From the sequence record LR756504.1: a stretch of 64,000 nt of DNA, one strand, 5' to 3'. The position numbers were made by a program, and so were the translations under genes. Each line of letters opens with the position of its first letter. Within the stretch, counting starts at the first letter, position 1. Shown here piece after piece: positions 5,089-50,546 of the stretch. The notes below the pieces were generated by a model. That model was not told the DNA's origin. It ran no database searches and worked only from the letters and a program-made list of their open reading frames with translations.

Positions 5089-5424
5089 CTATTGTAATTC
5101 TTTTATTGCTTGTTCGTACTTTTCAACAAACCAACTATTAGTAATATTATTAATATCTGCTGATATTTGACTATTTACTCTAATCATAGTCTGTCCAATA
5201 GGCGATTTTAAAAACAATAAAATTTCGTCAATATCTGATTCTGTTAAATTTTTCTCATAAAATGGTAAAATTCTTTCTTCTAATTCTTCAATATTAAAAT
5301 GTCTTTTAAATTGCGAACTTAAAACTGATTTTTCACCATCACCGTCTATTAAAGCGCTTAATTGTGCTTTAGTTAAATCATAAAATTGAGTTAACTTTAA
5401 AAATTCTTTTATTTTATCTTTCAT
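5089..5424 (-). CDS. DUF2059-like protein
   Basis: PFYEKNLTESDIDEILLFLKSPIGQ matches the Y...(L/F)T..E...l..F..SP.G pattern. Confidence 0.7.
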   Translation of the reverse strand: MKDKIKEFLKLTQFYDLTKAQLSALIDGDGEKSVLSSQFKRHFNIEELEERILPFYEKNLTESDIDEILLFLKSPIGQTMIRVNSQISADINNITNSWFVEKYEQAIKELQ

Positions 5425-18396: not shown

Positions 18397-18624
18397 ATGA
18401 AAATAAAAGATTTAGTAGAATTCCTAGGATCTTTACCTGAAGAGTTTCAAAACTTTGAACTTGTTATTAGAAGCTTTGGAACAGAAGAAGATAATAATAC
18501 TTATATGTATGATTTACCTATAATTTCTGGATTTGTAGACGAAGAAAATAAAGAGTTATGCTTATTGGATGAAGATAATACGGAATTATATAAAAAATTA
18601 AATGAAGAAAATGAAAATAAATAA
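18397..18624 (+). CDS. Hypothetical acidic protein
   Basis: 75 aa, overlaps nusA start. Confidence 0.7.
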   Translation: MKIKDLVEFLGSLPEEFQNFELVIRSFGTEEDNNTYMYDLPIISGFVDEENKELCLLDEDNTELYKKLNEENENK

Positions 18625-19873
18625 AGAAGAAAATACTTTAGTAAGCTCTTTTGCAGAATTTGCTAAAACAAAGAATATAGATAGACCTACTACAATTAGA
18701 ATTATAGAAGATGTATTTAAAACCATAGTTAAAAAGAAATATGGTGATGATACTAATTTTAATGTAATTGTTAATATAGAAAAGGGTGATTTAGAGATTT
18801 GGAGAAATAGAGAAATTGTCGATGATGAATTCGCAGAAGACAGTTTTGATTACGATGAAAACAAACATATTTCTCATACAGAAGCAATAAAGATTGCTGA
18901 TGATTTTGAAATAGGCGAACAGTGCTCAGAAGAAATTAAAATTGATGATTTCGGTAGAAGAAATGTACTTATAGCAAAACAAGCACTTCTTCAAAAAATA
19001 AAGGATTGGGACAACCACTTATTAACCGAAAGATACGAAGAGCTACTAGGTGAAATAATTCATGGTGAAGTAATTGGTTTTACTAATAATAGAAGTATTA
19101 TAATTCATGATGCTCTTGGTAAAGAACTTATTTTACCTAAAGAAGAACAAATATTTGCAGACAGATATAAAAAAGGTGATACAATTAAAGCATTGGTTCA
19201 TAAAATTGATACTTTTAAAGGTAAACCTGTAATTATTCTATCGAGAACAAATTCTTTATTTTTAGAACGTTTAATGGAGAATGAAATTCCAGAAGTTGGC
19301 GATGGACTAATCTCCATTAAATATGTTGTTAGAGAACCAGGTGAAAAAGCTAAAATATTAGTTGAATCATATGATGATAGAGTAGATCCAGTTGGTGCTT
19401 GTGTTGGTTCAAAAGGAAGTAGAATAAATACTATAGTAAAAGAATTGAGAAATGAGAACATTGATATTATTAACTATACTGAAAATTTCGATTTACTTAT
19501 TCATCGCGTTCTTTCTCCTGCTAAAGTCTCCGATGTAAAAATTGAAGAAAATAAAATAATTGTTTTCTTAAATAACGATCAAGTTCCTTTAGCAATTGGT
19601 AGAAAAGGAGTTAATATTAAATTAGCAAGTAGAATATTAGGTAAAACTGTTGAAATATTCAGAAAAACTGTCGCAATTGACGAAGATGATGTTGATTTAC
19701 AAGAATTTTCTGATGAAATTGAAGCATGGATTATAAACGAATTTAGAAAAGTTGGTTTGGATACAGCTAAACAAATTTTAGCATCTGATAAAAAAGATTT
19801 AATAAAAAGAACTGATTTAGAAGAAGAAACAATAGATGATGTAATACAAATTTTATCAAATGAATTTGAATAG
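18602..19873 (+). CDS. nusA: Transcription termination/antitermination factor NusA
   Basis: NusA N-domain, S1, two KH domains (VREPGEKAKI, VDPVGACVG.KGSRI, AIGRKGVNIKLAS) and Bacteroidota-type C-terminus (DLEEETIDDV). Confidence 0.95.
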   Translation: MKKMKINKEENTLVSSFAEFAKTKNIDRPTTIRIIEDVFKTIVKKKYGDDTNFNVIVNIEKGDLEIWRNREIVDDEFAEDSFDYDENKHISHTEAIKIADDFEIGEQCSEEIKIDDFGRRNVLIAKQALLQKIKDWDNHLLTERYEELLGEIIHGEVIGFTNNRSIIIHDALGKELILPKEEQIFADRYKKGDTIKALVHKIDTFKGKPVIILSRTNSLFLERLMENEIPEVGDGLISIKYVVREPGEKAKILVESYDDRVDPVGACVGSKGSRINTIVKELRNENIDIINYTENFDLLIHRVLSPAKVSDVKIEENKIIVFLNNDQVPLAIGRKGVNIKLASRILGKTVEIFRKTVAIDEDDVDLQEFSDEIEAWIINEFRKVGLDTAKQILASDKKDLIKRTDLEEETIDDVIQILSNEFE

Positions 19874-22452: not shown

Positions 22453-22541
22453 GGCGTGTTCGTCTAGTGGGAAGAGGGTAACTCTTCGGTAGGACAGTAT
22501 CTTTTCAGATAAAAACATAGGTTCGAATCCTTTACACGCTA
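22453..22541 (+). tRNA. tRNA-Glu(TTC)-like gene with hairpin inserted in D-loop and 6-nt anticodon loop
   Basis: Acceptor GGCGTGT/ACACGCT, D-stem GTCT/GGAC, TATC-TTTTCA-GATA, GGTTCGAATCC; extra GAAGAG-GGTAA-CTCTTC; promoter TAATTTTG at 22435-22442. Confidence 0.65.
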
Positions 22542-22556
22542 CTAAAATTAAAAAGT

Positions 22557-23546
22557 ATGAAAAAATTGTTAGTATTATTGTTATTAATGTTTATGCAATT
22601 AAACAGCTACGCCCAATGTCCAATAGATGTTAATTCTACGAATGGGTATAGTGTACATATAAATGTAAATATCACATCAATGATAGTAACACCTAATGGG
22701 TGTAATCCAGGTTATTGTTTATGTGGTTATGTTTATAACTATGTTGTAAGCTATAATGTTACATTTAGCGGTTTAAATATTCCACCAAATTTATATACGC
22801 TACAAGGTGTAATATATGATAATAATGGTAGTTCATTTTATAATTTACCCAATACTGGTGGAACTGGCACTACAACATCAGCAAATGTATCCACATTACA
22901 AAGTAATTGCAATACTGTAACATATAACTATTTTAACCCTTGTATTACAGTTGAAATTAAGGGTCCTGGTATTCCTGACCAAACAATATCATTAACGTGT
23001 CCGTGTACATCTACAGCACCAGTCGAATTAGTCTATTTTAAAGGAGACTCAAAAAATAATACCGCTATTTTAACATGGAGTACAGCAATGGAAAAAAATA
23101 ATGATTATTTCATATTAGAAAGAAGTGATGATGCGGTATCATGGAATGAGTTAGGAAAAATAAAAGGTAATGGTACATCAACATCAACAAATTATTATTC
23201 TTATTCAGATATCAATCCATTTCCAGTTAATTATTACAGATTAAAACAGGTAGATTATAACGGTGATTATACATACAGTCATATTGCTAATGTTAATTTA
23301 TCTATAATCACTACATATGTTTATTCAAATCAAACGGATGTTAATATTAAAGTAATATCGGAATCATTCACAGGTGTTAATTTCATTTTATATGATGCTT
23401 TTGGTAGAGTAATTTATAATGATTATGTTCTTAAAACAAGTGTAGAAATGCTACATAAAATGCAGACACAAGGCAAGCAATTATACATATTAAAAATTGT
23501 TCAAGATAATTATGTAATCGGTATTCATAAATTTATTTCAGAATAA
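22557..23546 (+). CDS. Secreted Cys-containing protein with T9SS-type C-terminal region
   Basis: Signal peptide MKKLL...SYAQ; PVELVYF.G...LTWSTAMEKNNDYFILERS.D...YYRLKQVDYNG module typical of Bacteroidota T9SS cargo. Confidence 0.8.
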   Translation: MKKLLVLLLLMFMQLNSYAQCPIDVNSTNGYSVHINVNITSMIVTPNGCNPGYCLCGYVYNYVVSYNVTFSGLNIPPNLYTLQGVIYDNNGSSFYNLPNTGGTGTTTSANVSTLQSNCNTVTYNYFNPCITVEIKGPGIPDQTISLTCPCTSTAPVELVYFKGDSKNNTAILTWSTAMEKNNDYFILERSDDAVSWNELGKIKGNGTSTSTNYYSYSDINPFPVNYYRLKQVDYNGDYTYSHIANVNLSIITTYVYSNQTDVNIKVISESFTGVNFILYDAFGRVIYNDYVLKTSVEMLHKMQTQGKQLYILKIVQDNYVIGIHKFISE

Positions 23547-23608
23547 TTAAAGAAAGAGAAAACATTTTATAAATATATACGTTATAATAAGTATAAATAA
23601 ATAAAGCA

Positions 23609-23692
23609 ATGAAAAATTTAACTAACATATTTTGGCATTTTCATTTTAAAGCTACAAGAAGACTTGGAATGGAAAACCTATATGTAAGTTAA
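23609..23692 (+). CDS. Attenuator leader peptide MKNLTNIFWHFHFKATRRLGMENLYVS
   Basis: 27-aa ORF below track cutoff; codons TTT TGG CAT TTT CAT TTT at 23630-23647; followed by terminator. Confidence 0.75.
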   Translation: MKNLTNIFWHFHFKATRRLGMENLYVS

Positions 23693-23748
23693 TCTAAACA
23701 TAAAGGAAGAAATTAAAAACCCAAGTCTTAAAAGGCTTGGGTTTTTTT
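23638..23748 (+). promoter_or_regulatory. Transcription attenuator (1:2, 2:3 and 3:4 hairpins)
   Basis: 23638-49 pairs with 23664-75; AAGACTTGG 23659-67 pairs with CCAAGTCTT 23721-29; terminator CCCAAGTCT-TAAA-AGGCTTGGG-T7 23720-23748. Confidence 0.75.
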
Positions 23749-23758
23749 GTTTTTATAC

Positions 23759-23836
23759 ACACCGATACTAGAATGATCTCCAAAATCATAATCGTATAAT
23801 TGGGTGAAAATACAGGTTCGAGTCCTGTGCGGTGTC
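23759..23836 (+). tRNA. D-armless tRNA-Trp(CCA)-like element with long variable region
   Basis: Acceptor ACACCGA/GCGGTGT; ATGAT-CTCCAAA-ATCAT; ACAGG-TTCGAGT-CCTGT; only 7 nt where the D-arm should be; overlaps tRNA-His 5' end. Confidence 0.55.
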
Positions 23837-23905
23837 TGTAGTGTAGTGGTTTAAGCACAATACTTTGTGGAAGTATTGGGATGGTTTCGAATACCATCGG
23901 ACACA
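23832..23905 (+). tRNA. tRNA-His(GTG)
   Basis: GTGTCTG/CGGACAC acceptor, G-1 encoded at 23831, GTGT/GCAC D-stem, ATACT-TTGTGGA-AGTAT; atypical T53:A61 and A73. Confidence 0.8.
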
Positions 23906-23909
23906 CAAA

Positions 23910-23981
23910 GGGGGTTAAGCTAATCAGGTGAAAGCAGGCCATTGAAGCTGGTCAGAGACGGATCGATACCGTTATCCCCCA
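23910..23981 (+). tRNA. tRNA-Phe(GAA)
   Basis: GGGGGTT/ATCCCCC acceptor, GCT/AGC D-stem, GGCCA-TTGAAGC-TGGTC, GACGG-ATCGATA-CCGTT; atypical A8 and A54. Confidence 0.75.
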
Positions 23982-23999
23982 CAATGTTATTATTTTGGT

Positions 24000-24021
24000 N
24001 NNNNNNNNNNNNNNNNNNNNN
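24000..24021. other. Assembly gap (22 N)
   Basis: Run of N right after the tRNA cluster. Confidence 1.
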
Positions 24022-24031
24022 TGTATATTTA

Positions 24032-24667
24032 TTACCACATTTCTGATGGTAAATTTGGATTATGCTTCTGCTCACTTGATTCAGAATCATCTTCATCCGA
24101 TACTTCTTCTTCAAACTCATCCATATCCGCTTCATCATCTTCGTCTATTTCATCGTGTTTAAAATCATCATGATGGTGATGTGAATAAGCTTCTTCGTCG
24201 TCCCAATCATCAAATTTTAAAACATGTGAATCATCATCTTCGTCTTCGTCATCATCTTTAGAATGACTAAAATCATCCTCAGCAAAATCGTCATCCGAAT
24301 TATCTTCTGAATCATCTTCATCAAATTTTGCATTTCTTATAAAATTTGAAATTTCTTCATCAGAATCTTCTTCACGCGGCTCTTTTCCATCTTCATGGTT
24401 AATCATGTCTTCTTCCTCTTCTTCTAATGTAGCTTCCTCATCTGACATAACTTCACAAGATGCTTTAGCTGCATTTACATCCTCTAATGCACTATGAAGT
24501 TCTTCTTCGGACATAACACTTAACTCATCTTTTGTAAAAGCATGATACTCACATTCATTTGGATCAATGCTATTTTGAATAGCTAATATTTTATCAACCA
24601 ATCTGTTAAATATTTCTAAATCAAGGCTTTCGTTTATGAATGTTTTAAATCTTTTTAAATGTTTCAT
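24032..24667 (-). CDS. Highly acidic protein with capsid-targeting-like N-terminus
   Basis: MKHLKRFKTFINE|S; D/E-rich C-terminal half; TTATATATA upstream. Confidence 0.75.
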   Translation of the reverse strand: MKHLKRFKTFINESLDLEIFNRLVDKILAIQNSIDPNECEYHAFTKDELSVMSEEELHSALEDVNAAKASCEVMSDEEATLEEEEEDMINHEDGKEPREEDSDEEISNFIRNAKFDEDDSEDNSDDDFAEDDFSHSKDDDEDEDDDSHVLKFDDWDDEEAYSHHHHDDFKHDEIDEDDEADMDEFEEEVSDEDDSESSEQKHNPNLPSEMW

Positions 24668-24770: not shown

Positions 24771-26135
24771 ATGAAATTATTTAGCAACTCTTTTTTAAAT
24801 GATTATAGTATCTTAAAACAAGCTGTTATAGGCATAGAATTTGAAGCATATTCTAAGGCCAATTATCCAATTACATTAGAAATATTTAATAGAGAATTAT
24901 CACCAATTAAAGTGTGGGGTTATCAACATTGTGATAAAAATTTTAAAGTTGATTCTAAAAATTTTAAAATTTTGCCAGATTTGAGTGGAGGATTCAATTG
25001 TTTAGAATTAGTAACTGGGCCGCAAACATATTTGGAATGTAGACTAACATTATCCAAAATATTGAAAGTATTACAACAAATAGCACACACTACCGATAGA
25101 ACTGGATTACATATCAATATTTCGTTTCCAAATGATTCTGGTAAGAATATAGAAAAACTTAATATTCTAAAACTTATCTTAAATTTAGAAGAAACTAAAA
25201 TTTATGATTCATTTCCAGATAGAAAAGATAACGTATATGCTAAGTCTATTAAAAACATAATACCTTATAAAGATTACGATTACACAAATTCAACCGCAAA
25301 TATTCTTGGAAACTCATTATTACTACCCAATACTAAATATTATGGAATTAATTTTGCAACAATGGGAGAAGGTAGATTAGAATTTAGATACATTGGTGGC
25401 GAAAATTATCAATTCAAAGTAAATGAAATTTTAGACTTAATGGATTACTTTATTTTATTAACATGGAATTCTATAGGCGAACAATTGGATAATAATGAAG
25501 CTAAAATGTTAAGAGTTTATTTAGATGAAAACATTAGAAAATATAAGGCTTTAAATAAACTTGATACCTTTATGGCCCAATTCCCTACAGTGGAACTTCA
25601 AATTGATAAAAGAAATGATTATGAAATAGTAAGTGCGTACTATTCAATTTTATATGATGATATTTATGAATTAATTAGACATAGTAAAAATTTTAAAAAT
25701 GCAATCATAAATTATGACACTGAAACTAGATGTATTGAAATTGTTGGTGGTGAAAATATAGAATTTACAGGACCAGTTTCTCAGTTGGATTTTATTAACT
25801 GTACATTAGAACAAGGTGATTTTACAGAATGTAATTTTATCAGAAGTCAAATTAAGAATAGTATAATGTTATCGAGTAATTTATCAGACTCCTACGCAGA
25901 AGAATCAAAACTACTGTCTTGTAAAGTAGATAAAGAATCTGAAATAAAAGATTGCTATTTCACAGAAGGTGTTATGGGTGGTAATATGGTCGGTGGAGTA
26001 TTTCGTTCAGGTAAAATTGGTGTAGATGGTCATGTTAGTCAAGAAACTAAAGTACTTAATGATGAACAAGACTTTTTTAATATTAAGAAATATGGTACTA
26101 ATGATATAAATAAAAAAGGATTTAAAAAGAAATAA
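24771..26135 (+). CDS. Putative amidoligase (COOH-NH2 ligase type 2) with C-terminal beta-helix-like repeats
   Basis: IGIEFE, PDLSG, LELVT.P, TGLHINIS, KYYGIN, RLEFR. Confidence 0.8.
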   Translation: MKLFSNSFLNDYSILKQAVIGIEFEAYSKANYPITLEIFNRELSPIKVWGYQHCDKNFKVDSKNFKILPDLSGGFNCLELVTGPQTYLECRLTLSKILKVLQQIAHTTDRTGLHINISFPNDSGKNIEKLNILKLILNLEETKIYDSFPDRKDNVYAKSIKNIIPYKDYDYTNSTANILGNSLLLPNTKYYGINFATMGEGRLEFRYIGGENYQFKVNEILDLMDYFILLTWNSIGEQLDNNEAKMLRVYLDENIRKYKALNKLDTFMAQFPTVELQIDKRNDYEIVSAYYSILYDDIYELIRHSKNFKNAIINYDTETRCIEIVGGENIEFTGPVSQLDFINCTLEQGDFTECNFIRSQIKNSIMLSSNLSDSYAEESKLLSCKVDKESEIKDCYFTEGVMGGNMVGGVFRSGKIGVDGHVSQETKVLNDEQDFFNIKKYGTNDINKKGFKKK

Positions 26136-50400: not shown

Positions 50401-50469
50401 TATATACTTTTTTTAGTATATATAAAAATTGTTAGCTATGTTTAATACATATAACTTTTAAGGCTATTG

Positions 50470-50546
50470 TGGGCCCTGGGGGATTCGAACCCAAAACCAA
50501 CCACCTGTGTATGAGACAGTTGCACCACCAATTGTGCTAAGGGCCC
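50470..50546 (-). tRNA. tRNA with CAT anticodon, Ile2-like, 4-nt bulge in T-stem
   Basis: GGGCCCT/AGGGCCC acceptor + A73, GCAC/GTGC D-stem, CTGT-CTCATAC-ACAG, GG(TTTT)GGG-TTCGAAT-CCCCC. Confidence 0.75.

Follow-up and report, generated by a model that had tools for sequence, protein, structure and literature searches.

Ribosome-mediated (leader-peptide) transcription attenuation is a textbook mechanism, in which a short leader reading frame rich in particular codons is followed by a terminator/antiterminator switch. In its classical forms (trpL, hisL and pheL) and its multivalent forms (ilvL for Leu/Val/Ile, thrL for Thr/Ile), it as a rule controls amino-acid biosynthesis enzymes, while the pheM leader peptide of the E. 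coli pheST operon appears to adjust a synthetase, PheRS, to the supply of charged tRNA. T-box riboswitches (Rfam RF00230) typically adjust synthetase and related genes to the charging state of a cognate tRNA by direct tRNA binding, without a reading frame. Large phages, including T4, T5 and the jumbo and huge phages, carry arrays of tRNA genes with accompanying synthetases (PMC7162821). These are usually discussed as a fixed supplement for codon usage or as spare parts against host tRNA nucleases, and how they are regulated is largely unknown.

Here, we analyzed a 64,000-nucleotide stretch (hereafter, the window) of LR756504.1, an uncultured 636,363-bp phage. It is one of the >634-kb Mahaphage-clade genomes that were predicted to infect Bacteroidetes (PMC7162821), and its assembly has 26.8% G+C. 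Several features are consistent with this host prediction: a phage NusA homologue encoded in the window, a gene just upstream of the locus that belongs to a family of Bacteroidota T9SS-sorting-domain proteins, and TAnnTTTG-like motifs upstream of the leaders of more distant relatives. An initial annotation, made from the sequence alone, proposed that a 27-codon leader in this window forms an attenuator whose Trp, His and Phe codons match the tRNA genes it controls. We found that all the sequence features described there are present, that the interpretation is supported by comparative data, and that the unit is not a single oddity but belongs to a family predicted to govern most tRNA genes, and several cognate aminoacyl-tRNA synthetase genes, of these phages.

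Anatomy of the locus

The features of the locus are listed in Table 1. The leader region as a whole folds far better than shuffled sequences (z = -6.0), and the leader is embedded in a long imperfect hairpin whose core pairs the regulatory codons (region 1) with region 2. Region 2, AAGACTTGG, is perfectly complementary over 9 bp to region 3, CCAAGTCTT, with a duplex energy of -14.0 kcal/mol against -5.2 for shuffles (p = 0.002). Region 3 also forms part of the 5' arm of a 14-pair intrinsic terminator, the only terminator-like site in 2.5 kb. Only about 10 nt separate this terminator from the first tRNA-like gene, which leaves no room for a separate promoter. The regulatory run is short, at six codons, yet it is not a chance feature: in the six-frame translation of 288 kb, only two runs of six or more F/W/H residues containing all three occur, and one of them is this leader. 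Each codon of the run can be read by the downstream tRNAs, with TGG read only by the CCA-like element. Among Rfam matches at E<=10 in 23000-24100 there was no leader family and no T-box, indicating that the unit is analogous, not homologous, to the curated leader families (His_leader, Trp_leader, Thr_leader and others).

Table 1 Features of the predicted attenuator and tRNA unit, in window positions.
Feature	Position	Strand	Remarks
NusA homologue	18602-19873		About 4 kb upstream of the unit
T9SS-sorting-domain family gene	22557-23546		Just upstream of the unit
Conserved promoter-like box	23556-23588	+	Ends in ATATATACGTTATAAT, 20 nt upstream of the leader ATG; promoter function inferred
Leader ORF	23609-23692	+	27 codons
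Regulatory codons	23630-23647	+	TTT TGG CAT TTT CAT TTT (F-W-H-F-H-F)
Region 1:2 hairpin (anti-antiterminator)	23618-23692	+	Core 23638-23649 pairs with 23664-23675; -19.3 kcal/mol
Region 2, antiterminator 5' strand	23659-23667	+	AAGACTTGG
Region 3, antiterminator 3' strand	23721-23729	+	CCAAGTCTT
Intrinsic terminator	23715-23748	+	Stem 23715-23746, core 23719-23742, T7 tract; -14.4 kcal/mol
tRNA-like RNA without a D arm	23759-23835	+	Loop CUCCAAA, CCA at 23780-23782
tRNA-His (GTG)	23832-23906	+	ARAGORN; Rfam 56.8 bits
tRNA-Phe (GAA)	23909-23982	+	ARAGORN; Rfam 38.7 bits

The tRNA-like gene assigned to Trp in the initial annotation is the exception. It was not called by ARAGORN at default settings or by Rfam (RF00005) at E<=10, and relaxed ARAGORN settings gave contradictory identities (Thr, or Ile with an intron), which we set aside. 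The element has a 7-bp acceptor stem, an anticodon-type stem-loop and a T arm but no D arm, and in the window only, its 3' acceptor strand overlaps the first 4 nt of tRNA-His. Its function as a tRNA is thus uncertain. It is nevertheless a real, conserved tRNA-like RNA of unusual architecture: its acceptor, anticodon and T stems are kept in L054 and L056 (see below), and in three homologues 9 of 16 pairs show compensatory changes. We found no canonical tRNA-Trp in the parts of this genome that we examined.

Conservation in related phages

We next searched for orthologous loci. Synteny around the conserved 454-aa downstream gene was uninformative, as it is lost in the other >460-kb phages and in several metagenomic relatives, with no tRNAs nearby. 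Scans of IMG/VR with the upstream protein, an 18-nt leader word, a flank pattern with free regulatory codons, and a ThrRS encoded elsewhere in the genome (unit C, below) found no relatives; the 47 hits to the 18-nt word were chance matches. A scan of metagenome contigs returned only the source contig itself. Closer relatives were found through protein look-ups in public assemblies, and we denote these metagenomic loci L005/L006, L054 and L056. All of them keep the box, the leader, the terminator and a tRNA cluster.

The leader ORF is 91-94% identical at the nucleotide level in L005, L054 and L056, compared with 78-84% for the flanking protein genes and 61-87% for the tRNAs. A 60-nt core that includes the six regulatory codons is invariant. 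Start, frame and stop are kept (27-28 codons), including across an in-frame 3-nt insertion in L056. The box is nearly identical in these three loci although the upstream genes differ between relatives, so the unit is conserved as a module.

Notably, only Trp, His and Phe tRNAs follow this leader: Trp, Phe, His, Phe, Trp in L005; Trp, Phe, His, CCA-like, His, Phe in L054; and CCA-like, His, Phe in L056. After the tRNAs come a full-length TrpRS (TIGR00233, 283 bits) and/or a truncated HisRS-like protein. Since the gene order differs between loci, the agreement between the W-H-F order in the peptide and the order of the tRNA genes, noted in the initial annotation, is coincidental.

Alternative pairings in the leader RNA

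Equilibrium folding of the full leader always kept the terminator, also with ribosome footprints imposed, and the switch therefore has to be kinetic, as in classical attenuators. We thus folded the RNA that is free 3' of a ribosome parked on each W/H/F codon, truncated before region 4 is made. In all four homologues this gives the 2:3 helix. The 1:2 pairing is present in this unit and its three homologues, and without a ribosome it dominates in the window and in L056.

The 2:3 helix covaries between the window and L056: region 2 changes from AAGACUUGG to GAAACUUGG while region 3 changes from CCAAGUCUU to UCAAGUUUC. One G-C to A-U change is mirrored in region 4, whereas one A-U to G-C change lies in the terminator loop, so only the antiterminator explains it. 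However, two of the four W/H/F homologues have only 7-9 bp antiterminators of borderline significance (p about 0.055).

Leader codons co-vary with the downstream tRNA set

To test whether leader codons are related to tRNA identity beyond this locus, we scanned upstream of every tRNA cluster in the same genome. Denoting the Trp/His/Phe unit as unit A, this revealed four more primary units, B to E, with the same architecture. Units B-D also have the same box, and all four exact genome-wide matches to TATATACGTTWWAW in the 636-kb record lie at units A-D. In unit B, the run I-A-I-V-E-I-A-V-I-G-G-A-E-E-G-V precedes Glu, Ala, Ile(UAU), Val, Gly and Glu tRNAs, followed by a GlyRS-like fragment. In unit C, T-T-I-I-R-N-M-N-N-N-I-N-R-T-R-T-T precedes Thr, Asn, Thr, Arg, Arg, Ile(GAU) and Met, with a ThrRS after the first tRNA-Thr. 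In unit D, K-Q-D-K-Q-Y-Q-P-Q-Y-D precedes Asp, an Rfam-only tRNA with a Pro(UGG) loop, Tyr, Tyr, Gln and Lys x4, with a LysRS-like gene. In unit E, L-S-L-C-L-S-L-S-L-S-L precedes Leu, Leu, Ser, Cys, Ser, Ser, Leu and Leu. Together, the five sets cover all 20 amino acids. Only Ile appears twice, and it uses different codons, ATA in unit B and ATT/ATC in unit C.

Nested leaders inside the clusters follow the same rule, dropping the amino acids whose tRNAs lie upstream of them. After tRNA-Asp, the run has K/Q/Y/P but no D; before the Lys tRNAs and the LysRS-like gene, the run is KKKK; and before Arg(UCU)-Ile-Met, the run uses only ATG, ATT and AGA. The match extends to individual codons: ATA goes with tRNA-Ile(UAU) and ATT/ATC with tRNA-Ile(GAU), while AGA goes with Arg(UCU) and CGC with Arg(ACG).

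The same scan was run on the tRNA clusters of LR756501, LR756502, LR745206 and LR756500. It detected units such as Q7 before four tRNA-Gln genes, P/Q/D before Pro-Asp-Gln, S/R before Arg-Ser, T/P/A/V/R/G before Arg-Thr-Val-Ala-Gly-Pro, and S/K/H/F/W before Trp-His-Phe-Lys-Ser. The last example shows the W/H/F unit gaining K and S codons where Lys and Ser tRNAs have joined the cluster. The box ATATATACGTT is specific to the phage analyzed here and its closest relatives, and the more distant records have other upstream motifs.

Overall, across the five phage records plus relatives, 27 leaders match their own tRNA set at p<1e-4, compared with a mean of 2.3 and a maximum of 8 when sets are permuted among clusters. 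At p<1e-6, the counts are 17 against 0.6. Of 250 run codons, 212 are readable under strict wobble by a tRNA of the cluster, and most of the rest lie in four-fold boxes or correspond to tRNAs that ARAGORN missed. A terminator is present in 24 of 24 scored units, at -5 to -20 kcal/mol, usually ending 9-30 nt before the first tRNA, and 20 of 24 units have an antiterminator duplex stronger than shuffles at p<0.05 (combined P about 1e-24).

A proposed mechanism and its alternatives

We consider it highly likely, on sequence and comparative evidence alone, that the unit is a ribosome-mediated transcription attenuator gating a phage operon of tRNA genes. In the proposed mechanism, transcription starts at or near the conserved box, a promoter inferred from conservation only, and the leader is translated at once. 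If charged Trp-, His- and Phe-tRNA are plentiful, the ribosome would run through to the stop codon, and region 2 would stay paired with region 1 or be covered by the ribosome. Region 3 would then be left free to pair with region 4, and RNA polymerase would terminate at the T7 tract. If any of the three charged tRNAs is scarce, the ribosome would stall on F-W-H-F-H-F and hold region 1. Region 2 would then pair with region 3, the terminator could not form, and the CCA-like RNA, tRNA-His and tRNA-Phe, together with TrpRS and a HisRS-like gene in relatives, would be transcribed. The new tRNAs would relieve the stall and shut the unit off again, giving a negative feedback loop. Unit A has the full 1:2 / 2:3 / 3:4 design and should be off without translation. 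Units B-D show no clear 1:2 anti-antiterminator, so their default state may differ, and ribosome passage over region 2 may be what turns them off.

An unlikely alternative is that the leader senses general translation capacity or transcription-translation coupling, perhaps as a timing device acting with the phage's own NusA, with codon content being secondary. The NusA homologue is syntenic in relatives, and since units B-D lack a clear 1:2 hairpin, any slowing of ribosomes would open them. However, general sensing does not predict that each leader uses exactly the amino acids, and often the exact codons, of its own tRNA cluster, nor that nested leaders drop amino acids whose tRNAs lie upstream. 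Less probable still is a translation-independent sensor, in which uncharged tRNAs pair by their anticodons with the codon run, in T-box fashion, and stabilize the antiterminator. The runs are indeed complementary to the anticodons of the downstream tRNAs, and tRNAs and synthetases are of the kind of genes that T-boxes control. Yet no T-box match was found even at E<=10, every run lies in frame in an ATG-initiated ORF with a conserved N-terminus and a stop, the L056 insertion preserves the frame, and runs of 6-20 different codons are not a single specifier. It is also very doubtful that the small ORFs encode functional micro-proteins with incidental RNA structures: an N-terminal motif (M-K/R-T/N...N-I) is shared by several units, but the C-terminal halves change by non-synonymous substitutions while the pairings are kept, and the composition of each peptide follows the tRNA set and does not look like a protein family. 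Finally, a coincidence, in which a chance ORF in AT-rich DNA precedes a terminator that simply ends the upstream gene 170 nt away, with no other terminator intervening, TTT and CAT being common codons at 27% G+C, and the tRNAs are transcribed independently, is contradicted by the leader's conservation above flanking genes and behind unrelated upstream genes in L054 and L056, the compensatory changes, the short distance from the T-tract to the first tRNA-like gene, and the permutation analysis.

A broader reading, which we regard as somewhat more likely than not, is that these huge phages run a self-contained, modular supply control for translation. Nearly all their elongator tRNA genes, and several cognate synthetase genes, would sit behind attenuators whose codons name the tRNAs they release, with five primary units in this phage partitioning all 20 amino acids and nested units fine-tuning sub-clusters. 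Each tRNA set would then be made only when ribosomes actually stall for it. Such stalling could result from codon-usage mismatch between a 27%-G+C phage and its host, or from host shut-off. It could also result from tRNA-cleaving defense nucleases, which would make these units counter-defense sensors, although this trigger, named in the initial annotation, is pure inference. A demand-driven switch of this kind would explain how a 636-kb phage with 45 tRNA hits avoids making them needlessly, and would offer a built-in readout of which host tRNAs become limiting during infection. It would also show that leader-peptide attenuation operates in phages predicted to infect Bacteroidota (PMC7162821). 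The units are compact (about 150 nt), modular and naturally diversified for every amino acid, and are potentially useful as codon-specific or tRNA-specific sensors.

Comparison with described systems

The tRNA arrays and synthetases described here are of the sort reported for large phages, and LR756504.1 is itself one of the genomes in that report, which mentions no attenuator, leader or terminator (PMC7162821). In full-text literature searches, we found no report of leader-peptide control of tRNA genes, in phages or elsewhere, and this regulated class, the closed feedback topology, the nesting and the genome-wide partition of the genetic code appear to be new. T-box riboswitches share with the proposed mechanism a terminator/antiterminator choice tied to tRNA charging, but a T-box typically binds the tRNA directly and needs no ORF, whereas the leader frame here is conserved.

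The E. coli pheST attenuator likewise appears to combine a short leader ORF rich in cognate codons with a terminator/antiterminator switch that controls a gene of the translation apparatus. It probably senses one amino acid and controls a synthetase only, on a bacterial chromosome, whereas the phage unit is predicted to control tRNA genes themselves, with cognate synthetases in relatives and sister units, and the family uses mixed runs for 3-7 amino acids. There is no sequence homology between the two: Rfam leader families give no hit. With ilvL, thrL, trpL, hisL and pheL, unit A shares the four-region geometry and, with the multivalent leaders, mixed regulatory codons for several amino acids, although sister units B-D lack an obvious 1:2 hairpin. 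Unlike these biosynthetic attenuators, the units here are also nested inside operons, and the product would be the sensed molecule itself, the tRNA, which would close a direct feedback loop.

Genes flanking the leader-tRNA unit

Examining the surroundings of the leader-tRNA unit revealed a phage-encoded NusA homologue with NusA_N and KH domains. This gene is syntenic with the unit in the relatives L005, L054, and L056, and might tune pausing or termination at the attenuators. The gene upstream of the unit belongs to a family of Bacteroidota T9SS type A sorting-domain proteins, an unusual cargo for a phage that supports a Bacteroidota host. Directly after tRNA-Phe lies a masked stretch of N, and a further short element there cannot be excluded. 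We also detected a 454-aa protein of unknown function with a weak pentapeptide-repeat match, which is conserved at 32-45% identity in the other huge-phage records of the phage collection and has more than 1,300 metagenomic homologues.

Features of the window, of record LR756504.1, and of other sequences
Sequence	Coordinates	Strand	Feature
Window	18602-19873	+	NusA homologue
Window	22453-22541	+	tRNA detected only by Rfam
L005	5880-5985		tRNA detected only by Rfam
LR756504.1	9960-10171; 280876-281120; 461091-461310		Similar odd tRNAs
Window	22557-23546	+	T9SS type A sorting-domain family gene
Window	23759-23835		tRNA-like RNA without a D arm
L054	6327-6404		tRNA-like RNA without a D arm
L056	about 5180-5258		tRNA-like RNA without a D arm
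Window	24001-24022		Masked N stretch
Window	24771-26135	+	454-aa protein
Window	50469-50546	-	Solitary tRNA-Met(CAT)
LR756504.1	134215-135375; 398748-399884; 220859-221536	-	Cognate aminoacyl-tRNA synthetase genes
L005	8116-9720		Cognate aminoacyl-tRNA synthetase gene
L054	7511-8473		Cognate aminoacyl-tRNA synthetase gene
L056	6622-7263		Cognate aminoacyl-tRNA synthetase gene
L005	7640-8110		HNH-endonuclease ORF
L083	3781-4641	-	HNH-endonuclease ORF

Unusual tRNAs, and genes inside or just after the tRNA operons

A tRNA with a 21-nt insert in the D loop, found in the window and also in L005, was detected by Rfam (35.9 bits) but not by ARAGORN. Similar odd tRNAs, often paired with tRNA-Met(CAT), lie just upstream of units C and D, two further leader-tRNA units of this genome, and at three other positions in the record; none has a leader. 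A solitary tRNA-Met(CAT) has no leader or terminator unit upstream. It may be an initiator-type tRNA, which an elongation-stalling sensor could not report on.

The conserved tRNA-like RNA that lacks a D arm carries a CCA anticodon-type loop and a conserved single-stranded segment of 21-22 nt. In the window it overlaps tRNA-His by 4 nt, whereas in relatives the two are separated by 1-2 nt.

HNH-endonuclease ORFs are inserted within tRNA clusters of L005 and of L083, and may be mobile elements that reshuffle the clusters. In addition, cognate aminoacyl-tRNA synthetase genes sit inside or just after the attenuated tRNA operons: ThrRS, a LysRS-like gene, a GlyRS-like fragment, TrpRS, and a truncated HisRS-like gene of about 210 aa. 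Several of these are shortened relative to bacterial enzymes.
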